Origin: Octopus bimaculoides
Taxonomy: Eukaryota
NCBI RefSeq assembly: GCF_001194135.2
Contig: NC_068999.1
Location: 49,114,076 to 49,151,418, forward strand
Direction: 5' to 3'
DNA length: 37,343 bases
Of the stretch, positions 5,375 through 37,343 are shown in pieces; within the stretch, counting starts at the first letter, position 1; the number at the start of each line of letters is the position of its first letter. Under the pieces are notes generated by a model. The model searched no databases and was not told where the DNA came from. It saw only the letters and a program-made list of their open reading frames with translations. Both the position numbers and the translations under genes were made by a program.

Positions 5375-5608
5375 GTCAGTTTTTATTCTTTTACTTGTTT
5401 CGGTCATTTGATTGCAGCCATGCTGGAGCACCACCTTGAAGAGGTTTTAGCTGAACAAATCAACCCCAGGACTTACTTCTTAAGCCTAGTACTTATTCTA
5501 TCATTCTCTTTTACCAAACTGCTAAGTTACAGGAACATAAACACACCAACACCAGTTGTCAAACAATGATGGTGAGGGGCAAACACAGATACAAAGACAT
5601 GCATACAT

Positions 5609-9895: not shown

Positions 9896-10052
9896 TGCGA
9901 CAGGCTTCTTTCAGTTTCTGTCTACTAAATCCACTCACAAGGCTTTGCTCGGCCCGAGGCTATAGTAGAAGATACTTGCCCAAGGTTCCACAGTGGGAAT
10001 GAACCTGGAACCATGTGGTTGGTAAGCAATCTACTTACCACACAGCCACTCC
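9665..10052 (-). mobile_element. SINE family B, near full length
   Basis: Reverse-complement match to 11917-12255 with an expanded internal (TA)n. Confidence 0.9.
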
Positions 10053-11069: not shown

Positions 11070-11390
11070 TTTAGAAGCTCACTTCACAACCATATGGTTT
11101 TGAATTCAATCCCACTGCACAGCACCTAAAGCAAGTGTCTTCTAATATAGTCTGAGGCTGACCAATGCCTTGCAAGTTAGACGGAAACTGTGTGGAAGCC
11201 TATCATATTTATGTGTGTCTTTGTTCTGTGTTTGTCACCACCACTTCTACTTGAAAACCAGTGTTGGTTTGTTTACATATTCATAACTTGCAGTTCAGCA
11301 AAAGAAACTGATAGAATAAGTGACAGACTTAAAAAAAAAATTCTTCAAGGTGGTGCCCCAGCATGGCCACAGTCTAATGACTGAAACATA
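11070..11390 (+). mobile_element. SINE family B, diverged
   Basis: Head, core and tail similarity to 11917-12255. Confidence 0.75.
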
Positions 11391-11916: not shown

Positions 11917-12255
11917 GGCGCAGAAGTGGCTGTGTGGTAAGTAGCTTGCTTACCAACCACATGGTTCTGGGTTCATTCCCACTGCGTGGCACCTTCGGCA
12001 AGTGTCTTCTACTATAGCCTCAGGCCGACCAAAGCCTTGTGAGTGGATTTGGTAGATGGAAACTGAAAGAAGCCCATCGTATATATGTATATGTGTGTAT
12101 ATGTTTGTGTGTCTGTGTTTGTCCCCCCAGCATCGCTTGACAACCGATAGAATAAGTACTAGGCATCCAAAGAATAAGTCCTGGGGTCGATTTGCTCGAC
12201 TAAAGGCGGTGCTCCAGCATGGCCGCAGTCAAATGACTGAAACAAGTAAAAAGAG
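11917..12255 (+). mobile_element. tRNA-derived SINE family B, best-preserved copy
   Basis: A-box-like TGGCTGTGTGG and B-box-like GGTTCATTCCC (11970-11980). More than ten related copies occur in the window. Confidence 0.9.
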
Positions 12256-16414: not shown

Positions 16415-16772
16415 TTGGATTCAGTCCCACTGTGTGGCACCTTGGGAAAGTGTTTTCTACTAAAGCATCAGGCTAACCAAAGCCTTGTGAGTGGATTTGG
16501 TAGACAGAAACTGAAAGAAGCTCGTCTTATTGTGTGTGTTTGTATGTGTGCCTTTGTGTCTGTCCGTCTCCCAGTACCACTTGACAACCATTGTTGGTGT
16601 GTTTACATCCCCGTAACTTAGCAGTTTGACAAAAGAGACCGATAGAATAAGTACCTGGCAAAAGAGACTGACAGAATAAGTGCTGGGATTGATTCATTTG
16701 ACTAAAAATTCTGCAAGGTGGTGCTCCAGCATGGCTAGGGTCTAATGACTGAAATGAGTAAAAGATAAAAGA
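16415..16772 (+). mobile_element. SINE family B in the last CWC15 intron
   Basis: Match to 11917-12255 with a partly duplicated gatagaataagtac segment. Confidence 0.8.
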
Positions 16773-20831: not shown

Positions 20832-23231
20832 AGAAATGGTAAATGGTTTATGGTACAAAAGAAATCACCTTAAATTTACTAAAATAATCGAATTATGATT
20901 GGAAATATAATCTTAAAGTGTTCACTGTATCGTAGTGAGGATCTGATCAAAGNNNNNNNNNNNNNNNNNNNNNNNNNNNNNNNNNNNNNNNNNNNNNNNN
21001 NNNNNNNNNNNNNNNNNNNNNNNNNNNNNNNNNNNNNNNNNNNNNNNNNNNNNNNNNNNNNNNNNNNNNNNNNNNNNNNNNNNNNNNNNNNNNNNNNNNN
21101 NNNNNNNNNNNNNNNNNNNNNNNNNNNNNNNNNNNNNNNNNNNNNNNNNNNNNNNNNNNNNNNNNNNNNNNNNNNNNNNNNNNNNNNNNNNNNNNNNNNN
21201 NNNNNNNNNNNNNNNNNNNNNNNNNNNNNNNNNNNNNNNNNNNNNNNNNNNNNNNNNNNNNNNNNNNNNNNNNNNNNNNNNNNNNNNNNNNNNNNNNNNN
21301 NNNNNNNNNNNNNNNNNNNNNNNNNNNNNNNNNNNNNNNNNNNNNNNTTTTTTTTTTTTTTTTGTTATTATTTAATTCCAATATAATCGTAATCTACACC
21401 ATCTGAAAAGTATTTGTAGAAAATTTCATTAAAAAATACCACTTTACTGACGATATGATAAAACAAAGCTGACTCGTGTGAATTTTCCGATACTTCTTAC
21501 TCCATCCTCGGAAATTTTTTTTTCTTTTTCTTTTTCCCCACCAAATTCCGATATAATTGGAATCTAACACCATCTGATGCGTATTTGTGGAAATTTTCAT
21601 TAAAAAATTTTTTTTTATTTTTCTGAAAGTTATGAGGAAACAAAATCGGGACAGGGGTACACTTATGTAGGTATGCCTATATATAAATAAACATAAACCT
21701 AAATAAATAATCTTGAGTTCGGAAATCAAATTCACATTTCATAATTTGGAGAAACGAAGGAATCGAAATTAAAAAAAAAAAATCTGAAAGCCAGCGTGCA
21801 ATTGTACGGTGAGTGATGAAACAGTTAGGCTGTGATATTATATCCGGGGAAACACCTCTCCTCAGTGCTTTGTCTACTTATTCTCCTTCGTTTTAACTCT
21901 TATATTTTCGTTTTTGCTGTTTATAGTTCCTTTTCTCAATTTCACTCTTTACGTCTATAATTCGTTTTCTCCTTCCTATTAATAATTCGTTTTCTTTTTT
22001 TTTCTATTTACAATAGTCTATCTCTTTTTCTGTCTCACTCTCTCTATTGTTTTCTCTACATGCACGCACACCAAATATTTACCAGTGTGCGTGAATGTAC
22101 ATTAAACAAACCTGGTTCGCCCGCTGTTATAGGCTCTTGACTTAAAAGAGGGCATTTAACATTGCATCATGGATGTCTTTCGTAAAACATGTAAACTTTG
22201 GTCCTCGTGGTTCTACCTCGTATCGAGGAAACGGTATGTTTACCTCTTTGTCTTCATTACAAGACGCATTCGCACACGTCATTCTGTGATGTGAGTGTGT
22301 GCATGCGTTTACTTATCTATATTTTCTTTTATTATATTACTGTTACAAAAAGTTATTTATTCAAGGTCTTCGTGCGCCATCACTTTGACTAATTGGCCAA
22401 AAGATTAATAGGGTCTCAATCACAGCTTTTAACCAACGAGGGAATCTCTACACCTGGAGTGGGAGAATTTCTCCATCATCAAACTTAAAACTGCCCGCTG
22501 ATGAGGTCCGTAAAAATCCACGTGGAAAAAGAAAGAAAACAAATTGAAAGCCATTTTAAACCAAAACATTAATTTAATATAAATTGGATAATTATGAAAT
22601 TGTAAAATTAAAGATTAATAATTTTTTTTATCAACAGAGATGTGTCCCACAACCTGCCATAGTCCCCCGATAACTGAAAAAAAGGCTCCTCATTCGATAT
22701 GGCCACTCTATCTGCTAGAAATAATAACCAAATCGCTTACAAATTACACTTTACCGTCTTAAATAAAGAAAGGACATTAGATAATTGAGCAACTTTGATT
22801 AGCAATCTGTCCCATCACGATTGGAGCTAAAGGGGTATTGAGATTACGCAACGTTCGTGTATTTTCAATGACGTTAGTGACAAATGAAATGAGTGGCTTT
22901 AATCAGAAATTAAAATTTCGTCGAGGGTATACACTTAAGTAAGCTAATTTTTCAAACCGATTCTGTTGTTTCGCCCGTCCGTTAAGTTTTTACTGGACAT
23001 TTTTATGGTCTGTAGTATTGTATAACATAAGTTTTTGCTCTGAGGGTAGGTACAAATGAATTTGTTTTCTTCTAACCGCAAATCTTAATCTGAAAATTCT
23101 TTTTAAAATGTAGTTTTGCATGCTGATGACAAATATCACAGTTATTATTTTGGAAAGTTTATAATAAAGAAGTTAGAAGCAGTTAAATTTATGTATTTTT
23201 ACCCAATGAATTCCAAGCCAGTGTCCTCGCA

Positions 23232-23264
23232 GCGGAAGTCGAAACTATTTGTTGTCATGGCAAC
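23232..23264. promoter_or_regulatory. Candidate promoter: ETS-like GCGGAAGT plus RFX X-box GTTGTCATGGCAAC
   Basis: The X-box at 23251-23264 differs by one base from the palindrome GTTGCCATGGCAAC. The ETS-like core is at 23232-23239, in a locally CpG-containing stretch. Confidence 0.4.
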
Positions 23265-23479
23265 TCTAGTGTAGCGTGGGTGAAAGGATTGACAGCAACT
23301 AGGTTCTGTAAGGTGAAATTAGGAGTCAATATCACTACCATAGTAAACTATAAAAATTATTTACAGATCTGCGCGGAAGATTTGCCCAACAATCCAATGA
23401 AGATTTACAACCGGGTTTCAATTCCCATACAAGGCAAAAAGACACTTAGTGGAAGGGGTTAGGAAGAAGGAGAAATTAA

Positions 23480-23735
23480 GACAAGGAATGTATTTACTTC
23501 AGACTTGAAAAGAAGAAAACAATGAGATGGAAGAGAGTTCCAAAGTCTGGCAGTTCAAGATAAGAGCTACAACCATAGAAAGACTTCCATATTCATGGAA
23601 GCACAACAGCATTTGGATGAAGAAGCTGTGAGTTTCGAGTCAGGCGAGATGGCACAAAGTGATCTCGGACTAAGAGAGAAAGTTCATCAGAGCACTTCCT
23701 GTGGTAGTAATCATAGAAAAGACAAAGAACGGTGA
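23480..23735 (-). mobile_element. CR1/L2-group LINE, degraded 3' end of the RT ORF
   Basis: Minus frames read VLCLFYDYYHRKCSDELSLLV...RLTRNS..LHPNAVVLP and *TARLWNSLPSHCF, typical C-terminal motifs of this group. Confidence 0.7.
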
Positions 23736-24324
23736 CATTGCGTCACCGTGACAAGGCTTGCAGAGTTGAAGCAAGAAAGGGACCAGTCAAATTAAGAGAC
23801 TCACTTCTGAACCCATCTGAGGCAACCCAAGGCTTTGATCAGCCTGGGGTTATAATAAAAGACACTTGTCCAAGGTGCCATGCGATGGGACTGAACTCAA
23901 GACTACATGGTTTGGAAGCATGCTTTTCAAGCACACAGCCACACCTACACCTAATTGTTTGTGTTTTAATCCCAGATGAACCTTATTGAAGGAAACCTAT
24001 GAACAAAGACAGTCCAATATTGACAACACCGTCTTCTTGTCTTAGCACTGTATTCTGGGTTGAATTATTATCCACTGTCATTTGTTTAGACATTATGAGG
24101 GAGATTCAGGTGTTATTTCTAGCAATCAGTGACTACATGGAATTGCAACATCAGTTGTCGTCGTTGTTGTTGTTGTGGTGGTGGAGATAATGAAGGTGTG
24201 TCACACTTGTTTATTCTTTATCATTTAATGTACTACAAAGGAATTAAACATGTTACATAATACTGTAGTTATATAATAAGTTGTAATATATTATATAACA
24301 ATAGTAATAATCTTTTCTACTCTA

Positions 24325-24530
24325 GGCACAAGGCACAAAATTTTGGGGGGGAGGGGAGCCAGTCAAGTAGATTGACCCCAGTACGCAACTAATACTTAAT
24401 TTATTGACCCTGAAAAAATGAAAGGCAAAGTTGACCTCAGCGGAATTTGAACTTAGAATATAAAAACAGATGAAATACTGCTAAGCATTTTGCCCGGCAT
24501 ACTAATGTCTCCTCCAGCTTGCCACCTTAT
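24325..24530 (-). mobile_element. SINE family A variant
   Basis: Reverse-complement match to 18001-18200 and 20620-20760. Confidence 0.8.
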
Positions 24531-24840
24531 AACAATAGTAATCTTATTATATAACATAGTGTTAAAATTTCATTGTCATTTTCTCTCAAATTCATACATA
24601 AATACTTTATTTGGACACACACCTAATTAGTGTAAACATTCATACACACACACACACATACTTGAAGTTAGGTTTTTTAGACAAATTATAACAAACATAA
24701 CATGCTCAGGAAGAAGACATCAATATGTGTGTAGAGTGTAAATAATTTATTAGGCAGAAGTATAGAATGACAGTAAAACTATGTGCTTATGTGTGTGTAT
24801 TAATTGATTTTATGTCAAGTTGTATCTAAAATTTGGTTTT

Positions 24841-25265
24841 CATGCTATCCTCACCTATGGTCATGAATGTTGGATAATTACCAAAAGAGAACAATCGCAA
24901 ATACAAGTGACCAAAATAGGGTTCTTCCAAAGGATCTCTGGTGTAATGTTACTTAGCAAGGTGTGTAGCTTGGAGGACAGGGAGTCTCTCTAGGTCAAGC
25001 TGCCATTTCTATGCATTGGGAGGTCACAGCTTCAGTACTACAGGTATGTAGTTAGAATGTCATAGGAAAGAACCACAAGACAGATTCTTCATGCCAAGTC
25101 GACCAGCAGAAGACCTTGAGGTAGACCAAGAACGAGATGGTTGGATAATATCCATTGTCTCAGTTGGCCATGGCGGTTGCTTCTAATAGAACCCTATGGA
25201 GAAGGTGTCTGAGGACCCTACCCTGACAACCCTCCCAGGAATAGGGGACAGAAAATGGATGGATA
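24841..25265 (+). mobile_element. RTE-type LINE 3' fragment (dead RT C-terminus plus tail)
   Basis: HAILTYGHECWIITKREQSQIQVTKIGFFQRISGV...RSQLQYYRYVVRMS*ER...RRP*GRPRTRWLDNI, with three in-frame stops. Confidence 0.8.
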
Positions 25266-25599
25266 GATACTACAATACACACTTTATTACAAGATTAAAA
25301 AGACTCGAGATTTCTTTTCATTTTTTTTTTTTTTTTAAATTTTATGTGGAAGTACACAGGCTTTTTAGCTTATAACATTCGTGCTTTATTCAAAGTTAAC
25401 AACTATGTAAATGTAATGGAATTCAAACCAGGTAATGCAATCTGGTCACCAACATAACCTGTTGCAAACTTATCTCTTTACAACCATGAAATTCTGCTTT
25501 CTTTCAACTTGATAAAACACCCTAATTATTTAATTTTGCATAAATTAGATGTCTTATTCATGTCTTTTTCATTGGTAGTATTAACAGTATAAGAAAGCA

Positions 25600-25855
25600 G
25601 TGACGGAAACTGAAAGGAGCCTGTTGTATATATATACATATATATGTATATATATGTATATATTGCTTGACAACTAGTGTTGATATGTTTATGTCCCCCG
25701 TAACTTAGCACTTCGGCAAAAGAGATCAATAGAATAAATACTAGGCTTACAAAGAATTAGTCTTGGGGCTGAGTTCTTCAGCTAAAAAACCTTTTAAGCG
25801 GTGCTCCAGCGTGGTTGCAGTCAAATGACCGAAACAAGTAAAAGAATAGAAGAAA
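25600..25855 (+). mobile_element. SINE family B 3' part
   Basis: Match to 12056-12255. Confidence 0.75.
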
Positions 25856-28254
25856 ACATACATGTGTGCGTGTGTGGCGCTCCAGCATGGCCACAGCCTT
25901 TGGGCTGAAACGTATGTATGTATGTATATTAATGTTTTTTTTTTATGATGAATTATAAGAAAACCACTTTTACATTAAACTGAAGAATTACTCAATACTT
26001 TTTAGAGATTATATATATTTACAAGAAGAGCGGTGACTGTGACTCTGCCTTCGTCAGACAGTCCAACGAAGGCTAGCACGTCATACCTTCGAAGTCGCTG
26101 TCAACCCTCGTCTTGTAAAATTGTGTGTGTAGGACGGGCTTACACAGTTTCTATCTATCAAATTCGCTCCCAGGGCATTAGCCGGCCGGGACCTTAATGG
26201 AAGACGTATGTATGTGATTATGTGTGCGTGCGTATATGTATGTATGTGTAAATATATGTATGTATATATGCTTATATGTGTATATATATATATATATATA
26301 TACGTGTATGTATATATATATGTATGTGTTTTAATTTACGTATCTATGTGTCCGTCTTCCTGTCTTCGCATGTATTATGTAACACAGTGTATGCGTTTAT
26401 ATAACAGTGGGCACTGACATAAGGTGTATTTTGTTCGTATATTTCATTACATCGTAAATAATACCCCTTTTATCACTAACTCTAAACCCATATTTTTTCA
26501 TTATTTCAAGTTATCGGTCCCTATTATCACAGAACCCTTCTAAACCAACTACGTTAATTAATAACAACGACGGAAAAGGCCAGCAGAAACGTCAAATAAA
26601 CAAACAACACTTGTTTTGTTTACATTTTTTATAACTGATTCACTCTGTTGCCGACCGCACCTCCTACTTGTCTCTCTCTCTCTCTCTTTATCTCTGTCAA
26701 TCATTCTCGCTTTTTCTTTATCTCACATTCTCTCTCTCATTCTCTCTTTCCCCTCTCTCTCGTTCTCTCTTTCTCTCTGCCGTCTCTCATGTATGTATGT
26801 ATGTATGATTGTGTGTGTGTATGACTCTGAAAGAATGTGTATGTATGAGTGTGTGAGAGAGAGAGAAAGAGAGAGGGGGAAGAGAGAAGTAGATTGAGTG
26901 AGAGAAATAACTAGATAAGAGATAGTAAAATAATCCGTTTACTATTATATAACAAACCAAGCTACCCGGTGACAATGTAAAAAGAAGAGGCTCCGAAGGT
27001 AGTAATGAGATTTAGTTTGGAGAAAGGTAATCAGTACAAGTGAAATAATAATTCTGAATGCTTATAAACTAGGAATTGGTTTTCTTTCCCTTATCGCCAG
27101 ACCGGTTTTCGCCGATATTTCCTCGCTTGTCTCAATTTGTAACCCTTTAGCTAATAGTACATATCACACACATACACTTAAACACACATGTCAGTTACAC
27201 ATACGGATCCCAGTTTCCCGGTGGGAGATTTGTAGGAATTCTTACTGTATTGGATAGGTGACTATATTAATATTTATTTATTTTCCTCTTTTATGCACAT
27301 TTGATATATATATTTCTTTCTTTGACACACGCATACGCATATCATTTACACATACGGAGCCCAGTTTCCCAATGGGAGATTTGTAGGAATTCTTATTACT
27401 GTATTGAACAGGTGACTATGAAAACTGATTTCTTTTCCCCTTTCATCCACATTTCATAAATGTATCTCTCTTTCTTTGAGATTTATTTGGTTTTTATTTT
27501 TATTTTCTTTCGGTGAATCCAAGCCGGCCTCAACAAAATAATGTGGCTGAAGTTGCCAAAGATGTTACGTAAACGACCATCTCCGGTGACAAAACGATCG
27601 GAATATCGCATGGAAACGACATGCCACGTTCACCAAATTTACAAATAAATTAAATTGAGTTAATTAGTGTTTAATGGTATATTTTATTAACATCAACAGC
27701 ACAACTTAAATTTTTTTTTGTAGACATTCAGAGATTCCAAACGTGTAAATAATAGTTTCAAATTTTGGTACGAGCAAGGAATAAGAATGCCAGTCATATG
27801 CCAGCCTAGGGAGAATGCCCAAGGGACATTCATTCGATAGAGATACAAAAGAATGCCGATAAGTCGATTAGATCGACCTCAGTGGTCATCAGGCCGCTTG
27901 GCATTTTGTCCGACGCGCTATCGAGTCTGCCTAATACTCTTATGAACTAATGAAGGAGCTTATAATTACTAAGACTTAACTTTAATTAACAAGTTGTATG
28001 GTATATTCTATAAACAATGGAATCTCATACTTTTACATTGTGGGGAAATCTTTGGGGATTCCAGCTTCTTGTTTCAACGTAGTTCCTTCTGTTTTGCACT
28101 GGAAGGCGACAATTTTATCTAAAAAAAAAAATTTTTTTAAGAGTTATTGTAAGTAAAACTTGTTTCAGGAATTAATGAATATGTGAATGAGTTAAGTTGT
28201 ACTTGCGTGCGCGTGCGCATGTGTGTGTATGTATGAGTTGGGGTGTGTGTGTAC

Positions 28255-28445
28255 TCTTTTACTCTAATTTGTTTGTCATTTGACCGCAGCCATATTGGAG
28301 CACCGCCTTTAGTCGAACAAATCGACCCCAGGAATTATTCTTTGTAAGCCTAGTACTTATTCTGTCGGTCTTTTTTGCCGAACCTCTAAGTTACGGGGAC
28401 GTAAACACTCCGATATCAGTTGTCAAGCGATGTTGTGGGGGACAA

Positions 28446-28485
<40 letters not shown>

Positions 28486-28610
28486 CTGTGCACGATGGGC
28501 TTCTTTCAGTTTCCTTCTACCAAATCCACTCACAAGGCTTTGGTCGGCCCCACGCAGTGGTTGGTAAGCAAGCTATTTACCACACAATTTTTCCCTTCAC
28601 ACATACAGCC
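28255..28610 (-). mobile_element. SINE family B (internally deleted)
   Basis: Reverse-complement match to 11917-12255. Confidence 0.85.
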
Positions 28611-28814
28611 ACTCTATCTATCTCACTGGCAATATATAAGGTGCATGTATGAAATATTGGTAAAATTGCATCAATTTGCCTCTTCCTTTCATTTCTTTAA
28701 ACTAAGATGAGAAAAAAAAGGAACGACTTTGAGTTGACACAAAACAAAAGCTAGGAAAATTATTTACAATTTGTGTTGTCTACCGTTGTGCACCTAGAAA
28801 AGTTCTTCAATTTG

Positions 28815-29075
28815 GAGTGGCTGTGTGGTAGGTAGCTTGCTTACCAACCACATGGTTCTGGGTTCAGTCCCGCTGTGTGGCACCTTGGACAAGTGTCTTC
28901 TACTATAGCCTCGGGCAACCAATGTTGGTGTGTTTATGTCCCTGTAACTTAGCCGCTCGGCAAAAGAGACCAATAGAATAAGTACTAGGCTTATGAAGAA
29001 TAAGTCCTGGGGTTGATTTGTTTGACTAAAAGCAGTGCTCCAGCATGGCCACAATCAAATCACTGAAACAAATAA
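28815..29075 (+). mobile_element. SINE family B (central deletion)
   Basis: The head ggagtggctgtgtggtaggtagcttgc...ggttcagtccc is joined directly to the 3' half. Confidence 0.85.
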
Positions 29076-29717
29076 AATACATGTCCTTTAGGACATATCT
29101 GAATATCGCAGCAGCTTAAAATTTTGGCTTCTCTTAAAATCTTAAGTTTCGTGTTTTTCATATATAAAATGTTAAGTCATGTGTCAGGTTTGTTTGTATT
29201 TCTCTCTCTCTCTCTCTCTTCCTTTCCCTCTCTCCTCCCTTTATCCCTCCATTCTCTCTTCCCNNNNNNNNNNCTCTCTCTCTTCCTTTCCCTCTCTCCT
29301 CCCTTTATCCCTCCATTCTCTCTTCCCCCCCTCTCTCTCTCCCTACCTACTCTATCATAATAGCAAGAGGAAGCAGTGGCTATACTGAGAGACGTGCAGG
29401 AGAAAGAAAGTATTATTAAGGAAGGTAGCGGATTAGATACATAAATAGATTTACAGAGTAAGAGTGAGTGCATGAGTGACAGAGAGAGGGGGGGAGAGAT
29501 TGTTAACACTTGCCTATAAGTTAAGCAAGAAGACAATGTGGTGGTGGGGTAGAAAGAAAGTAAAAGAGGAGTGGTAGGAAAAAAGAAAGCAAAATCTCTA
29601 CTGTGTGTGTGTGTGAATGCTTATTTCTGTGTGTCATTGCATAACACCATTTGGACATCAATGAGGCTATGTTTACAATTTCTGTAAACATGAGGTGAAA
29701 TAAACACCAGAGATGCT

Positions 29718-29815
29718 ATGCTCCGAGTAGAAACTGCAGGAATTAATCAGAAAAAAAATTGCAAGCTTTTCTTTTTAATCCATTATCAATGTTGGAGGCA
29801 CTTCCCTACCAGCAG
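29718..29815 (+). CDS. ARH-family gene, predicted coding exon 1 (putative transit peptide)
   Basis: First ATG after an in-frame TGA (29691-29693): MLRVETAGINQKKNCKLFFLIHYQCWRHFPTS(R). Donor AG|GTATCT at 29816 is phase 2 and joins in frame to the acceptor at 30048. Confidence 0.5.
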
Positions 29816-29930
29816 GTATCTCAGGGTCACATGCATTTCTCCCCTTGGCCTGTACACTTCATGTGAGTAAAGGTAAAGTTACCTTTCCATATCATATTGA
29901 CTCTCTGTTCTATACTCTCCTCCACACTTA

Positions 29931-29975
<45 letters not shown>

Positions 29976-30047
29976 CACTCTCTTCCCCCCTCTCTGCTTC
30001 CTTTACATTTAAACATTTTTTCCCTTTCTCTACTGAAATTTTGCCAG

Positions 30048-30373
30048 AACCAACCAGAACTTCATGCGTTGCTTTCAAACCAGCGCTTGTTGCCAACACA
30101 AAGATATGAACTCCAATGAACTCAGTGAAGACAGCTCGACAACACCAACCACTAAAACACCCATCACCAAAACTCCAAAACCAATTTCAGAGAGTGTGAA
30201 GAGGGCCAAGTGTGAAGCATTATGGGGGATGTTTATTGGAGATGCTTTGTCCATGCCAGTCCACTGGTACTACAACACCAATGATATCCTGAAGAACTAT
30301 GACAGGTGGATATCAGACTACACAGCTCCAAAGACATTTTACAGTGGATCTATTCTTCCATTGTCTGCAGCTG
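30048..30373 (+). CDS. ADP-ribosylglycohydrolase-family protein, exon 2
   Basis: ...KRAKCEALWGMFIGDALSMPVHWYY... is the ARH/DraG first helix with a GDAL motif. Acceptor ttgccag ends at 30047; donor GTAAGT at 30374; alternative in-frame ATGs at 30064 and 30106. Confidence 0.9.
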
Positions 30374-30594
30374 GTAAGTATTCAATTCAGATTTTATTCT
30401 TTTTTATCTTCAATGTATTTTTTTCTCCTCCATGTCTTCACCATTTAAAAAAAAATATTTTCGATTATTTGTAGAAATAAAAGAGTTTGTAGATGTGGTA
30501 TTAAGCTACCAACTCATAAACCTTGAGTTCATTTCCATTACATATGTCTCATTGCATATTTGAGGGCAGTATACTCAACTCTAATGAAAATGTA

Positions 30595-30830
30595 AAGCCT
30601 AGTGGTTAAGGTGTTGCACTCACAATCATGAGATTACAATTTCAATTCCTGGATCAAGGAGGCTATCGTGTCTTTGAACAAAACACTTCATTTCATGTTG
30701 CTCTAGTCCATTCTGCTGTACATGAGTAACCCTGCAACACACCAGCATCCTGTTCAAGAGGCATGTTGTAACCTTGGTTACTTATAGACCATGGAAGCCG
30801 AGTCACTGGTGTGATGAGCCTTAGGACTCA
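30595..30830 (+). mobile_element. tRNA-derived SINE of a further family
   Basis: A-box-like TAGTGGTTAAGG and a degenerate B box, followed by gtgtctttgaacaaaacacttc, a central-domain-like sequence. Confidence 0.5.
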
Positions 30831-31071
30831 AGACGACACTAGCACTTGATTCTGTATGCTTCACCTACAAAAATAAACACTAGATCACCTGAGTTAGACT
30901 AGCATCCCATCCTGGGTGAGATTTGTCTCACATTTACTTCAAACCATAAAAACTAAGGCTGAGTACTACTGACAAAAATAGAATAGTGACAGTGAAAAGT
31001 CTCAGATTTGAAGGAGAGTGAGAGAAGGGGAAGAGATGAGAGAGAGTGAAAGAGAATGAGGAGAAAATATC

Positions 31072-31103
<32 letters not shown>

Positions 31104-32097
31104 ACGATAATTTAAAATAGATACGTAATGAAAAAAAAACTGGTTAATTAAGGCACAACAACGCTTTTTAAAGATTTTCTAATTATTTTTATTCCTTATT
31201 AATTTTTTTAATCATTTGTAACCAATATAATATCGTTCTTATAATCAACATTAACTTCACCGTTATCATTTTCATCGTCTTAAACACCCTCTTTAGCCTC
31301 TTCATTTAAAGTTTGCTTTCCACTCTACTGTGCTACTTAACAACCTTTTAATTAGATGCAAGGTCCTTGATGCTTTAATAGAGACTGGGAAGTTGCAGCA
31401 TTTATGCTGATTTCAAGGTCATTTAATAGCGACTTGGATTTCCGTCTGCAAACTTATATAAGCATTTCTATGGGAGATAACTTTGTAATTTATTACTCTG
31501 TAATATAAAGATTTACTTCCCTTCGGTGTTTTATCCTTAACGTATAATAATAATATTCAACCAACATTCACTTTTCCATGCATGCATGGATTGAGCGGAG
31601 TTTTTGAGGCATATTTTTTACGACCTGATGCCCTCCTTTTCGCCAACCCCCACTTGTTTCCAAGTAAGTTGATATTTCCCTATAGCCAGACATGATTTTG
31701 CAGAATATTGGAAATGAATAACATTGCATGTATGACTGGCATTCATTTACAACTATCGTGCATTGTCAAGAAAAAGAAACAACAAACATACATAGACGTT
31801 CACGCACAGAAATAAAAACAAGCGCGCGCGACGAACTTCTTTGTGAATGGATTTAGTATACCGAACTTCTTTTTGAATACTAAATCCATTCACAAGGCTT
31901 CTTTCAATTTCCTTCTGATAGCTAGACAAGCTGTGATTTGTAGAGTTATATTTCAGGCCCATAAACACAGTGCAACACCTGTGCAGGATACGAACTCACA
32001 ACTGACGATACGGTAGCCTGACGTACATTATGGTAGCCTTGTACCTGTAAAAGACAGACATAGATATGAAATTGCCTCTTTTTTAATCTGTCTAGTT

Positions 32098-32364
32098 CAG
32101 TGTTTCTCAACTGGGGTTCACACAACAAAATGTTAAATTGGGGCCCCTGAAAAATTCTGCTTTATATGTATGTATTAGTATGTATTGCGAGAAACAGCTA
32201 GGTATCGTTTTCTAGCGTTTTACATATTCAACATACACAAGTTAATGTGTGAAATACAAAATAGTAATAGCTTTTAAACATCAAATGGCTAGTGGGGGAG
32301 GAGGCAACTGAATAAAATAGTAATCAAAGGGGTCTGTTGGTAAAAAATGTTTGAGATCTCCCTG
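32098..32364. mobile_element. hAT MITE with perfect 8-bp TSD
   Basis: Ends CAGTGTTTCTCAA and TTGAGATCTCCCTG. TSD GTCTAGTT at 32090-32097 and 32365-32372. Confidence 0.85.
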
Positions 32365-32446
32365 GTCTAGTTTAGTATTCAGACCAATGAACATCACTCA
32401 TATTTCTATTTCTTTATGATGCTTCTATTTTTCATCCCTCTCTTAG

Positions 32447-32563
32447 ATGACAGTGGTCGCAAATCTTCAAGTAATAATCAAACCAAAGCCATTATAGGCC
32501 AAGTAATTTTACATGACAAACTTAAATTCTGGACAAGTGGAGATCCATATTTTTACCACCAAG
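32447..32563 (+). CDS. ARH-family protein, exon 3
   Basis: (D)DSGRKSSSNNQTKAIIGQVILHDKLKFWTSGDPYFYHQ(G). tcttag acceptor, GTAAGA donor, phase 1/1. Confidence 0.88.
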
Positions 32564-33074
32564 GTAAGATATATTTCAGGTTCATTAACTTAAGATTGTT
32601 GTCTAAATTGTTTTCACTGCAAAACTTTACTATTTATATTTGGGGAAAAACAGTGAGCTAGTGGGATAGTTAACATGTTGGACAAAATGCTTAATGGCAT
32701 TTTGTTTGTCCTTATGTTCTGAGTTCAAATTCCTCCAAGGTCAACTTTACTCTTCATGTGTGTGTGTGCGTATGTGTAACGGCATTCACCTGTGAGGGGT
32801 TAAGCCAGCTCCTATTGAGTTCACTGCATCACAGGTCAAAGCAGTCCATGCACATCTGTTGGTGGGTGATTCTGCAGTGTGTTGAAGCCATTCCTGGTTC
32901 CATGCTAAAGACTCAAGGGCCAGAAACAAGCTCCATGTCTGCTTTGACTGTCATCAAACTCTTATGAACTCACAACGAGACAGTCTACCCTTCGTACTTT
33001 CAGGACCAAAGAAATAAGTACTATAGGCCTTGTGCTTATAGTAAAAAGGAATATTTGGAAAAAAAGTAGTGAAC

Positions 33075-33260
33075 TAGCAAAATATTTAACATGTCGGACA
33101 ATATGCTTAGCAGCATTACTTTCTGGGTTCAAATTCTGCTGAGGTCAACTTTACCTTTCATCTGTTTAGGATCAATAAAATAAATACCAGTTATGCACTG
33201 GGCTCAATGTAATCAACTTAGCCACTCTCCCTAAAATTTCTAGCTTTGTGTCAAAATTTG
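33075..33260 (+). mobile_element. SINE family A variant, diverged
   Basis: Match to 18001-18200. A further head fragment lies at about 32658-32757. Confidence 0.7.
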
Positions 33261-33425
33261 AAATTATTATTATTTTTTGGAAAAAAGATGTTTTGCAGTA
33301 TTCCTTCTAGCTCTTAATATTCTGAGTTCAAATCCTACTTAGATCTAACCTACTAAATACTTTCTAAACTTTCCATAATTTACTCCTATCGCACCCTTGC
33401 CATCATGCAAAGGGAGCCCTTTTAC

Positions 33426-33510
33426 CAGTGGTTCTCAACTGGGGTCTGTATGACCCCTGAGGGTCCATATAAGACTTTTGGAGGTCCACATAATAAAATA
33501 GTAAATAGGT
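33426..33510 (+). mobile_element. hAT MITE 5' fragment
   Basis: CAGTGGTTCTCAACTGGGGT, similar to the start of 32098. The second TIR was not found. Confidence 0.5.
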
Positions 33511-33732
33511 GCTACCTTGTCTATGAATTGAACCCAAATGTTATCAAAATCAGTCAGCCCAACAACAACAACAAAAACGATTTATATAGTTTCTTCTTCT
33601 TCTCCTTCTTGAATACTTTCAACAGTTTTGTATAAGATGCTTGTAAAAGTACAATTTTTCTGAATAAAAGAAATTATTTTCTTTTTTTTTTTTTCCCCTT
33701 TTCTTTTCTCTTTCTCCTTACCTGTCATGAAG

Positions 33733-33997
33733 GGATGGAGCCAGGTGACAATACTCTTAATATGTTGGTCGCTCTGAAAATCCTTCAGACCATGCAAGAA
33801 ACTGACCCATGGGCACTAAAGTCCGACCAAGAAGTCATGGCCAGTGTACTGGAGTCCTATGTCCATTTCATGACCACACCCGACACTCACAATGACACTT
33901 ATGCAGAATCTTTCCATCGGCTGTTCTTCAAAGACTGGAATGCCGTTCCTGACCCTCCATTAAGGGGACAAGACATTTTTGATTTTGCTAAAAGAAG
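33733..33997 (+). CDS. ARH-family protein, exon 4
   Basis: (G)MEPGDNTLNMLVALKIL...YVHFMTTPDTHNDTYAESFHRLFFKDW...FAKR(R). Acceptor aag ends at 33732; donor GTAAAA at 33998. Confidence 0.9.
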
Positions 33998-34022
33998 GTA
34001 AAAGAATATATATATATTTCTA

Positions 34023-34065
<43 letters not shown>

Positions 34066-34380
34066 TCAAGATTAATGTAATATAAAGCTGAAAAAAAAAA
34101 TTAACACCAAATATACAGTGCGTGTGTTTTTATTGGCTAAACTGGCAATATGACCATCCCCAAGTACAACAACATCTGTTTCAACACACGATTTCACATA
34201 AAAAATCTTGCAAAACAAATATGTAAACGGAATATATCATCATCATTATCATTTAACATCCGTCTTCCATGCTTGCATAGATTGTATAATTTTACAGGAG
34301 CTGGTAAGCCTGGGGATAGCACCAGGCTCCACCATAGATGGATTGATAGATAGATAACAAAATGCATAAATCTATTTCAG

Positions 34381-34695
34381 GTCGCGGCAAATGTTATCTC
34401 AACCACCTGATAGCCAACTGTCGGGCATTGGAGCTTTGGTATTGGTTTTGCCTTGGGTTCTACGCAATGCTGGCAAAACTGAAGATGAGTGTGCGCAGAC
34501 AGCAGTTGAATTCATCAAGCTAACGCACCCAGTTCAATCCCTGATACCCTTCGTTGACATCTACTCCAGACTGTTTCACGCCACCTTGAATGGGTTTGAT
34601 TTGGGATCTGAAGTAAGAAAAATACTGGCACATGCTTCTTTGGGAGGCCATGACAACAGACACATGATGTTACATTTAGCAGATCAAGTAAGCAG
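34381..34695 (+). CDS. ARH-family protein, exon 5
   Basis: SRQMLSQPPDSQLSGIGALVLVLPWV...AVEFIKLTHP...LADQVS(S). The 'LTHP' motif is typical of ARH folds. tttcag acceptor; AG|GTAAGA donor at 34696. Confidence 0.9.
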
Positions 34696-35209
34696 GTAAG
34701 ACCCATGCCCGTCGCTAAGGGTGTGCACTGGACGGCACTGCCCCTTCGCTATTCAATGGTGCTCCCTCATATTTACAGTGATACACTTATTTTGAAACTC
34801 CACTTTAGCATTATTACAAATTAGTGACATGATTTCTACGGCTGGATGCCCTTCCGAATGCAAACCACTTTACAGAGCATGCTGGTTACTTTTTTCATGG
34901 CACCAGCACTGGTGAGGTTACCAAGTAACCCACAAGACAGAACCCTACAACTGAGTAGTGGGGTGTAGTATTGAGGGAGGTGGTTTTATGTTGGGTGATG
35001 AGAGGGTTAAAATATGAAAAAGGGACTGGAATTGGTGCCTTCAGCCTTTTGAGTCTGACGAGATGCCTATACTGCTAAGCACTTTATAGGTCCAAGACCA
35101 ATGGTCACTCTATGACCAGCCATAACTTTTAACTTCCTAAAAAAAATATATATTACTGCCCTAATGTTTTAGAGTGTGTTTTTTTTTGGATATATGAACT
35201 ACTGGTGAT

Positions 35210-35291
<82 letters not shown>

Positions 35292-35707
35292 GAGTCGCCC
35301 ATAATGCAATGCACTTTATAGGTGTGAAACCAATGGTCACTCTGTAACCAGTCATAACTTTTTACTTTCTAAAATTATATTATTGCTCTAACACTTTCAA
35401 ATGTACTTCAGTTTCACATATATGAACTACTGACGATGTGTGTGTGTGTGTGTGTGTAAATGCTTATATGTATGTATGTGTAATGCATGTGTATAAATGT
35501 GTATGTATTCATGTATATATATATATATATATATATACACATAAATACAATGAGTTTTCGGAGCATGGAAAGTGGATGTTAAACGATGACAATATATACA
35601 TACATGAGCAATCTAATTTCTTAGCACTAATCTGGACTGGGTTATGTTGAAATCTTAATGTTTCAAATAGAAATATATCTCTTCTTATTGTTTCATTTAT
35701 TACCCAG

Positions 35708-35859
35708 CTCTGAAAACTCGTTAAAAGGTCACCAAAGAAACACCAGTTTACTTGGATTGGCATGCTACATTGAATCTTCCATGAAAACCCTACTCTACCT
35801 GATGCTGTGTTTTGCTGAAGACTTTAACAGCGGTACATATGTCAACACCAATAGTGGAG
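35708..35859 (+). CDS. ARH-family protein, exon 6
   Basis: SENSLKGHQRNTSLLGLACYIESSMKTLLYLMLCFAEDFNSGTYVNTNSG(G). cccag acceptor; GTGTGT donor at 35860. Confidence 0.88.
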
Positions 35860-35927
35860 GTGTGTAACCATTGCTGCTTTATATATATTTTAAAATGTAT
35901 AACAGTAGCAATACATCTTTTGGGGTT

Positions 35928-35959
<32 letters not shown>

Positions 35960-35960
<1 letters not shown>

Positions 35961-36345
35961 TCTTTTACTTGTTTCAGTCATTGCACTGCAGAGCCATGCT
36001 GGGGCACCATCTCAAAGGGTTTTTCTTATATTTATAGGTTTTATTTAGCATTTATGTTTTTTTTTTTTTTTTAAGTCTGGTATTTATTCTGTCAGTCTCT
36101 TTTGCTGAACTGCTAAGTTACAGAGATGTAAGCAAACCAATACTTGTGGTCAAGTGGTGGGTGGGTGACAAGCACACACGCACACACACAGATATACACA
36201 CTCGACAGGCTTCCATGCAGTTTCCATCTTCCAAATTCACTCACAAGGCATTAGTTGACCCAAGGATACAGTAGAAGACATTTGTGCAAGGTGTCACACA
36301 TCAGGGACTGAACCTGAAATCACATGGTTGCAAAGCAAGCTCCTT
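35960..36345 (-). mobile_element. SINE family B, diverged
   Basis: Reverse-complement match to 11917-12255. Confidence 0.75.
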
Positions 36346-36384
36346 AAATTTATGTTTTATATGCCACCAGCACAGGTGCACTTG

Positions 36385-37040
36385 GTTTCACAGGTCCCCT
36401 TAAGCAGAGCACATCGCCAAAGGACTTGGTCACTAGTCATTGCCTCTGTGAGGTTCAAAGTTAGAAGGTCATGCTTCACTGCCTCATCCCATGTCTTCCT
36501 GGCTCTACCTCTACCACAGGTTCCATTCACAGTTAGAGATCGGCATTTCTTTACCCAACTGTCCTTGTCCATATGCATCACATGACCATACCAGCTCAGT
36601 CATCTTTCTTGCACATCCAGCAAAGCATACTAACTTCATTTCTCTCAAGCCTATGCATGTCCTTGGCTGTCATAGCTATGTTTCACTGCCATGCAGTGTA
36701 GCTGTTTGCACGCAGGCATCAAACAGTCTGCCTTTCACTCTGAGAGAAAGGTCCTTTGTTGCCAGCAGGGGTAGGAGCTTTCTTAACTTTGCTCAGCCTA
36801 ACCTTATTCTCACAGCTACACTCTCGGAACAACCACCTCCACCTGGTCACCTAAATACCAGAAGCTGTTAACTATCTCTAGCTTGCTCTCCTGGCAATTG
36901 ATGGAGTCTATTTTCCATGCATGTTCAGCATTTATCACTAGGGCTACATCTGTTTCCAAGCAAGGTAATTTTCCCCCATAGCCAGTCCATATTTTTACGG
37001 AAGATTGGAAACGAAGAACCCCCACTTGAGTGATGGTGAT
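36385..37040 (-). mobile_element. RTE-type LINE, degraded RT C-terminal fragment
   Basis: Minus frames read LEIVNSFWYLGDQ and MDKDSWVKKCRSLTVNGTCGRGRARKTWDEAVKHDLLTLNL...DQVLWR. Confidence 0.85.
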
Positions 37041-37239
37041 GCTCTTTTACGACTATCACATGATGTCAGGCAAAGGAGACAGTAAAACACACAGGCACAT
37101 ATACACACAAACATATGTACACGCACAAACACACACACACATACACGCATATATATAAACACGTTGTAAAAAAACTAAATTATATAAATGCTTTTTGTTT
37201 CTTTTTCAAATCTTAAATTTTTATCCTCTTTGATTGCAG

Positions 37240-37343
37240 GTGAGAACTGTCATCGTGGTGCAGCATTAGGAGCTGTTTTAGGTGCAGCTTCGGCGCAGGG
37301 AAAAAGTGAGAAGATCAAAAACGTCTGGAAAAGTGGCTTGACG
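37240..37343 (+). CDS. ARH-family protein, exon 7 (runs off the window end)
   Basis: (G)ENCHRGAALGAVLGAASAQGKSEKIKNVWKSGLT corresponds to the C-terminal GGDxD...GAxxGA motif. Acceptor ttgcag ends at 37239. Confidence 0.92.

Follow-up and report, generated by a model that had tools for sequence, protein, structure and literature searches.

Gene structure of the locus

The DNA analysed is a window of 37,343 nucleotides from Octopus bimaculoides (contig NC_068999.1, positions 49,114,076 to 49,151,418), a stretch of AT-rich and repeat-rich eukaryotic DNA whose plus strand carries a gene for a protein of the ADP-ribosylhydrolase (ARH) fold. The window means this whole stretch, and positions are counted from its first letter. 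The gene is the subject of this report, together with the set of conserved residues that its product carries in place of the canonical ARH active site. Enumeration of AG/GT splice sites, combined with comparison to homologues, gave seven coding exons in the window with GT-AG at every junction (Table 1). An earlier note on this DNA, made from the letters alone, had described stop-free exons for such a protein, and these were recovered: a six-frame reading of 30000-37343 yielded plus-strand stop-free blocks that hold all three of the strings it quoted, GDALSMPVHW, PGDNT (residues 173-177, 33741-33755) and GGENCHRG.

The gene is not confined to 30048-37343, as had been proposed. Position 30048 coincides exactly with the exon 2 acceptor, and coding exon 1 is found 7.8 kb upstream of it. 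At the other end, exon 7 passes the window end, beyond which about 28 C-terminal residues fall as judged from the orthologue of Argonauta. The product encoded in the window has 448 residues including exon 1, and the frame supported by homologues has 426 codons from 30048, or 421 from the ATG at 30064. The 459 stop-free codons counted previously do exist as a path (34695 > 34878-34954 > 35671), but this path adds about 38 codons that are absent from all 81 orthologues and was rejected. The direct junction from 34695 to 35708 matches Argonauta and 80 other orthologues. Many stop-free combinations for an extra exon between 34700 and 35560 were also weighed and set aside, the added residues being found in no homologue. 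The codon for G414 is split across the junction of exons 6 and 7 (35859 and 37240-37241), and no selenocysteine codon is needed to read the gene.

The match to Pfam PF03747 and an identical public protein establish that this is a real gene and not a chance reading. The encoded protein is 100% identical to the UniRef entry A0A0L8GEA0 of Octopus bimaculoides over 98% of the draft query, and 75% identical to a 482-residue protein of Argonauta hians. The public entry departs from the conserved frame after ...KSEKIKN and closes with 29 unrelated residues (window 37300-37343); the window continues as KIKNVWKSGLT, in agreement with AAWKSGLT of Argonauta and with the family consensus WK-GL. Judging from these alignments, the C-terminus of A0A0L8GEA0 probably reflects a mistake in the gene model or else a minor splice form. 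Intron 1 (22234-30047) holds an assembly gap, seen as a run of N at 29264-29273, and many microsatellites.

The product of exon 1 is a basic and hydrophobic N-terminus for which the AlphaFold2 model gives a low-confidence helix at residues 2-18. This segment is missing in the fish orthologues and is replaced by a longer hydrophobic segment in many invertebrates, a pattern that suggests organelle or membrane targeting, or an anchor segment.

Table 1. Coding exons, conserved motifs and repeat copies located in the window.
Feature	Position	Strand	Content and basis
Coding exon 1	22169-22233	+	Residues 1-22, MDVFRKTCKLWSSWFYLVSRK; GT donor; exact match to the N-terminus of P0001, near-match to Argonauta P0002
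Coding exon 2	30048-30373	+	Residues 22-131; low-complexity linker, helix alpha-1 and motif 1; AG/GT boundaries; Pfam PF03747 match starts here
Coding exon 3	32447-32563	+	Residues 131-170; with the end of exon 2 encodes the family-specific insertion between motifs 1 and 2
Coding exon 4	33733-33997	+	Residues 170-258; motif 2 and the H222-x-D224-T-Y-A-E228-S-x-H-R232 block; AG/GT boundaries and conservation
Coding exon 5	34381-34695	+	Residues 258-363; I274-G275-A-L-V loop and T306-H307 'TH' motif
Coding exon 6	35708-35859	+	Residues 363-414; A-C382-Y383 and N409-x-N411-x-G-G, termed invariant; the 34695>35708 junction reproduces P0001 and fits homologue spacing
Coding exon 7	37240-37343 (cut by window end)	+	Residues 414-448; motif 3, G414-E415-N416-C417-H418-R419-G420
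Motif 1, GDALSMPVHW	30238-30267	+	Residues 86-95; His94 at the place of ARH3 Glu41 and the DraG Glu; alignments to MJ1187 and DraG
Motif 2, P173-G174-D175-N176-T177-L178-N179	33741-33761	+	HMMER and hhalign
H222-N-D224-T-Y226-A-E228-S-F-H231-R232 block	33888-33920	+	Loop aligning with the DraG Asp97 loop (hhalign)
Interspersed repeat copies	35981-36300 (intron 6), ~16431-16655, 11132-11340, 28335-28550, 11983-12144, 9898-9992, 5477-5562, 25666-25756, 28874-28993, 19406-19478		

Fold and superfamily membership

The product matched Pfam PF03747 (ADP_ribosyl_GH) with E=3.1e-28 and 99.7 bits against a gathering cut-off of 26.2, over profile positions 2-278 of 287. The AlphaFold2 model, for which an alignment of 82 sequences was the input, contains 19 helices, with a mean predicted local distance difference test (pLDDT) score of 88.3 and a predicted template-modelling (TM) score of 0.85; pLDDT is above 95 through most of the domain, and disorder is confined to residues 1-50. 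When the model was compared with the PDB by Foldseek, the best 35 matches were all ARH-fold proteins. The leading ones were MJ1187, DraG, the ARHL subunit of the chloroplast Orf2971-FtsHi motor, Tri1, Lmo0067, a Thermus TTHA-type ARH and ARH3, with a probability of 1.0, target-normalised TM-scores of 0.56-0.70 and identities of 11-16%. Because the Pfam match is accompanied by structural matches to ARH-fold proteins alone at the top of the list, the assignment to the ARH superfamily is secure, and the fold proposed in the earlier note is thereby confirmed by profile, model and structure comparison alike.

Profile searches place the family far from every solved structure. A phmmer search of the PDB with the octopus protein found nothing relevant, and a profile built from the animal members only reached a single solved structure, MJ1187, at E=4.7e-5. 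A broad profile of 43 sequences, including protists, algae and bacteria, matched MJ1187 at E=2.7e-18 and Rhodospirillum rubrum DraG at E=9.4e-14 with HMMER, and its hhalign alignment to DraG had a probability of 98-99% and E=1e-14 over 279 columns. NCBIfam models for named subfamilies scored poorly: the DraG equivalog model TIGR02662 gave 24.1 bits for the Argonauta orthologue and 43.1 bits for a bacterial relative against a cut-off of 337, and the Tri1 model NF041672 gave at most 18.9 bits against a cut-off of 490.

Two further features were noted. The 'TH' motif, a conserved feature of the ARH superfamily (PMC9503650), is kept in octopus, where L-T306-H307 aligns by hhalign to the LTH of DraG and ARH3; among the 82 animal sequences Thr occurs in all and His in 81, and the broad set has His in 27 and Arg in 13. 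The family also has an insertion of about 45 residues between motifs 1 and 2 (about residues 107-170) that has no counterpart in DraG by hhalign. In octopus it carries ILH153-D154-K155 and F166-Y167-H168 (ILHDK and HYH in the family), immediately upstream of motif 2.

Residue map of the canonical active site

Alignments to ARH3 were of limited use, and DraG and MJ1187 were therefore taken as the basis of the residue map. The family profile had no significant direct match to ARH3 (E=0.04-0.08), the animal-only profile was uninformative against it in both hhalign and hmmsearch, and the global hhalign alignment of the broad profile to ARH3 was reliable in the C-terminal half alone. The human ARH3 sequence used in the comparison was checked against PDB 6D36. 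In ARH3, Glu41 is the residue that we take to be the catalytic Glu. The first metal, MgA, is held by Thr76, Asp77, Asp78 and Asp316, and the second, MgB, by Asp314, Asp316 and Thr317; a D314E change removes MgB (PMC8141533).

In motif 1, His94 stands in the place of Glu41, seven residues after D87, which is the same spacing as from D34 to E41 in ARH3. The replacement of the catalytic Glu after GDAL by His, as claimed previously, thus agrees with the alignments to MJ1187 and DraG. The same alignments also upheld the claim that E-N-C-H replaces D-x-D-T in motif 3: GGENCHRG (413-420) aligns with GGDTDS of MJ1187, GGDADT of DraG and GGDTDT of ARH3, so that Asp314 corresponds to Glu415, the bridging ligand Asp316 to Cys417, and Thr317 to His418. 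Motif 2 required a correction. The earlier note had read G-D-N as the equivalent of T-D-D, with Asp175 in the place of Asp77, and this register is wrong by three positions. P173-G174 aligns to the P-G of DraG by both HMMER and hhalign, the hhalign posterior is 0.8-0.9 at the motif 2 columns, and Thr177 caps the N-terminal end of helix 178-193 in the AlphaFold2 model. Because these three lines agree, T-D-D is equated with T177-L178-N179: the canonical Thr of P-G-x-x-T (Thr76) is kept as Thr177, while Asp77 and Asp78 are lost to Leu178 and Asn179. A further canonical element, the GNGaaMR loop, contacts ADP-ribose in the structures of ARH3 and DraG; hhalign to both places S-G-I-G-A-L-V (272-278) at its position in octopus.

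Of the ARH3 set Glu41, Thr76, Asp77, Asp78, Asp314, Asp316 and Thr317, the octopus protein keeps the Thr (T177) and one acidic position (E415), and on this map the canonical two-metal site is absent. An ordinary metal-dependent ADP-ribosylhydrolase would then need other acids to fill the metal positions in three dimensions, for which D175 (or Glu), D154, D224, E228, D268 and E415 are the candidates. Several conserved acidic residues do lie near the canonical motifs in the sequence, and D87, T177, the TH motif and the GG-acid motif are all kept. Position 175, however, is not always acidic in the broad set (E25/D14/Q2/G1/M1), and neither are positions 154, 228 and 268; the place of the bridging Asp316 is taken by Cys, Val or Ala; Glu at the place of Asp314 is the very change that removes MgB in ARH3 (PMC8141533); and the DraG equivalog model stays at 24 bits against its cut-off of 337. 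Since the vicinal Asp pair, the bridging Asp and the ADP-ribose loop GNGaaMR have all been lost, an ordinary two-metal enzyme is considered unlikely.

Conservation and distribution of the clade

The 82 animal orthologues, which are 38-75% identical to the octopus protein, share 41 invariant columns, and His94, K155 and C382 are each present in all 82. In the broad set, no substitution was found at H94 (42/42), H168, T177, D224 and R232 (each 43/43), G174 or F234. Conservation of at least 90% was observed at D87, P92, W95, Y97, H222 (41/42), Y226 (42/43), C382 (42/43), G413-G414 and R419 (39/43), and of 88-91% at positions 415 (Glu or Asp, 39/43) and 416 (Asn, 38/43). Within motif 2, L178 is found in 41 of 43 sequences, and position 179 is Asn, Glu, Asp or Thr.

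These counts bear directly on the new metal site of His94, Asp175, Glu415, Cys417 and His418 that the earlier note had put forward. All five residues are present in octopus, and they are mostly present in animals other than fish, with Cys at 417 in 77 and His at 418 in 61 of the 82 animal sequences. Position 418 is Asn in fish and position 417 is Ala in Capitella and others, and the 43 relatives divide as C19/V16/A6 at 417 and H23/A9/N4/G4 at 418. In the conservation check suggested with that proposal, His94 is invariant and the acid at 415 is mostly kept, but Cys417, His418 and Asp175 vary, and with the register corrected Asp175 does not fall at a canonical ligand position. Given the variation at 417 and 418, neither Cys417 nor His418 can be an essential ligand, and a metal site that depends on this His/Cys pair is very unlikely.

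Database searches returned 576 proteins at E<=1e-5. The best 120 of these came from molluscs, annelids, a brachiopod, a nemertean, a hemichordate, amphioxus, echinoderms, a sponge and many ray-finned fishes; no tetrapod, arthropod or nematode was among them. An exhaustive profile search gave 209 cluster representatives at E<=1e-30, 1079 at E<=1e-10 and 2687 at E<=1e-3, and the relatives extend to bacteria, to protist and algal-looking sequences and to an ichthyosporean in which the domain is tandemly duplicated. A scan of one genome per prokaryotic species found at least 579 loci in bacteria; most are stand-alone genes, mainly in Desulfobacterales, Verrucomicrobiota and Methyloversatilis. On this evidence from homologues, the octopus gene product is a member of a widespread ARH clade in which the scaffold has been kept and the canonical active site replaced as a block.

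Some protist relatives, such as those of Creolimax fragrantissima, have two tandem copies of the domain per protein (P0123, P0128), and in P0128 motif 3 of one copy has degenerated to GGKT. Octopus and Argonauta are both substituted at the positions of octopus Y120, S121, D132, F166, F323, S386, T390, M395 and Y407, which are at least 90% conserved in other animals.

Comparison with known ARH-fold proteins

DraG and the archaeal MJ1187 are the closest solved ARH-fold proteins. They have the same all-helical fold (target TM-score about 0.7) and share with the octopus protein the GDAL, P-G-x-x-T, L-T-H and GG-acid-x-x-x-x-G...G-A motifs. At about 14-16% identity, octopus differs from both in having His94 for Glu, T-L-N for T-D-D, E-N-C-H for D-x-D-T and IGALV for GNGaaMR, and the insertion of about 45 residues is lacking in DraG. 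ARH3 (ADPRS/ADPRHL2), a Mg-dependent hydrolase of Ser-ADP-ribose, poly(ADP-ribose) and O-acetyl-ADP-ribose, shares the superfamily and fold; the part that aligns is the C-terminal half, with LTH and GG(D/E), and the acidic residue kept at the place of Asp314 is Glu.

The loss of canonical residues has parallels in proteins that no longer act as enzymes. In ADPRHL1 (ARH2), the trypanosome mt-SAF23 and the chloroplast Orf2971-FtsHi ARHL subunit, the ARH fold is likewise retained with the canonical catalytic residues substituted. The octopus protein could similarly be a pseudoenzyme, a scaffold or a ligand-binding protein in which the fold is kept for structure or for binding ADP-ribose or another ligand, with no catalysis. 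Three observations fit such a role: six of the seven residues that serve catalysis or metal binding in canonical enzymes are changed, the structural and sequence matches include ARH-fold subunits that are not catalytic (6sga_FP, 8xks_Q, 8xqw_G), and the cephalopod copies have extra substitutions at conserved positions. However, ADPRHL1, mt-SAF23 and the chloroplast ARHL are lineage-restricted parts of specific assemblies, whereas the octopus clade spans bacteria, protists, algae and animals and, unlike pseudoenzymes of the ADPRHL1 type, keeps its own invariant polar residues. From bacteria to animals, there are His, Asp, Arg and Thr residues at or beside the canonical motifs that never vary, and stand-alone genes in hundreds of bacterial genomes with no fixed partner suit an enzyme better than a scaffold. 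This alternative is weakened by the invariance of polar residues around the place that corresponds to the active site, and we regard it as less likely than an enzyme.

The same applies to the crystallin version of this alternative, which the earlier note had also raised. Jellyfish J1-crystallin and SELENOJ form a subfamily within the ARH superfamily. This subfamily is distributed among ray-finned fish, sea urchin and amphioxus (PMC13134290), and in a comparison by distribution and names only, this aquatic-animal pattern resembles that of the animal members of the octopus clade. No clade member is named SelJ or crystallin in any source, including the curated RefSeq sets of Salmo, Takifugu and Oryzias, and the sequence-based analysis gave no pointer to lens expression.

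Interpretation of the proposed rebuilt active site

The reading that we favour is that the octopus protein is a working hydrolase of the ARH fold whose active site has been rebuilt around His, and its probability is put at roughly 0.5. An enzyme is favoured because polar conservation is deep at the canonical pocket and because stand-alone genes occur in hundreds of bacteria and in animals. The replacement set of polar residues, invariant or nearly so, consists of H94, H168, T177, D224, R232, D87, H222, Y226, C382, E/D415, N416 and R419. These residues would define a different site, formed in part by the family-specific insertion and in part by the H-x-D-T-Y-A-E-S-x-H-R block. His94 may act as the general acid/base in place of Glu, and the site would bind either no metal or a single one held by His and carboxylate side chains, not a binuclear Mg/Mn centre. 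Its most likely activity would be the hydrolysis of a ribosyl or other glycosyl conjugate bound in that pocket, with a substrate that is probably not a standard protein-ADP-ribose linkage. A more specific proposal is tentative, and somewhat less likely than not to hold in full: that the clade represents a novel kind of ARH-fold enzyme without a binuclear Mg/Mn centre, in which the invariant H94, together with H168, D224 and possibly C382, cleaves a non-classical ribosyl or glycosyl conjugate in organisms from bacteria to fish and marine invertebrates.

Several observations weigh against the enzyme reading. The two cephalopod proteins are the most deviant of the 82 animal members: of the 92 columns with at least 90% conservation, they differ at 9-10, where the median is 1. 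The changes include H120Y, P121S/N, G132D, H166F, G386S and L407Y/F; at position 166, for example, 80 of the 82 animals have His, and only octopus (F166, 32551-32553) and Argonauta have Phe. The octopus protein may therefore be shifted in function, with an altered or reduced activity, even though the core invariant set is intact in the cephalopod sequences. In terms of the substrate, no universal partner was found in the 70 bacterial loci analysed (of 80 fetched), and no partner occurred in more than about a quarter of them; because the neighbourhoods offer no consistent partner, the substrate is a guess. In addition, the clustering of the conserved residues in space is presumed from their positions relative to the canonical motifs.

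The accepted view of ARH-fold enzymes is that they undo ADP-ribosylation as two-metal glycohydrolases, and this clade has exchanged nearly all of the catalytic and metal-binding residues for another strictly conserved set. If its members are active, they would represent a second catalytic solution on the ARH fold, probably with a new class of substrate in nicotinamide adenine dinucleotide (NAD)/ADP-ribose or nucleoside metabolism, and would add an ARH-type gene to the animal repertoire beyond ARH1-3. On the corrected map, the residues worth mutating are H94, H168, T177, D224, R232, C382, E415 and N416, with C417, H418 and D175 being of lower priority.

Bacterial neighbourhoods and other clues to function

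Among the bacterial loci, genes of the flavin amine-oxidase family (Pfam PF01593) lie within 5 kb in 16 of the 70 (L026, L027, L060, L062, L067, L071, L072, L080; L006, L019, L033, L040, L042, L050, L057, L058). Their sequences form two clusters with no relation to each other, in Verrucomicrobiota and Desulfobacterales. About 10 loci of Verrucomicrobiota have, directly upstream, a gene for a lipoprotein of 290 residues that overlaps the start of the ARH-like gene. A short-chain dehydrogenase/reductase (SDR) gene is directly upstream in 5 loci, and a SOUL haem-binding gene is upstream in 3-5. These recurrent neighbours are leads only.

Long relatives were scanned for fused domains, and none was informative: the scan gave ADP_ribosyl_GH itself, gene-model artefacts (Gla/EGF/transposase) and a sub-threshold RAI1. 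The names of clade members in the source databases are generic ('uncharacterized protein', 'ADP-ribosylglycohydrolase') or automatic mislabels ('ARH3', 'DraG', 'coagulation factor VII' fusions). Literature searches for a description of the clade found nothing, and the statement in the earlier note that no functional description of this subfamily was known is in line with the names and literature searched.

Other features of the window

The remaining features are of repetitive or mobile origin. A family of interspersed repeats of about 200-300 bp is present on both strands in at least 10 copies or fragments that are 70-85% identical (Table 1). On the minus strand of intron 6, a stop-free stretch of 80 residues (36360-36599) contains WYGHVMHMDKDSWVKKC and GRGRARKTWDEAVKHDL and has what we take to be the appearance of the C-terminal tail of a reverse-transcriptase open reading frame of the long interspersed nuclear element (LINE) type; it is probably a decayed retroelement fragment. 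A second stop-free stretch, at 301-597 on the plus strand, contains AMRAYKKKHVLRNNNNNNPFSLSAITRLIKRFEETSL and presumably resembles the N-terminal helix-turn-helix region of a mariner/Tc1-type transposase.

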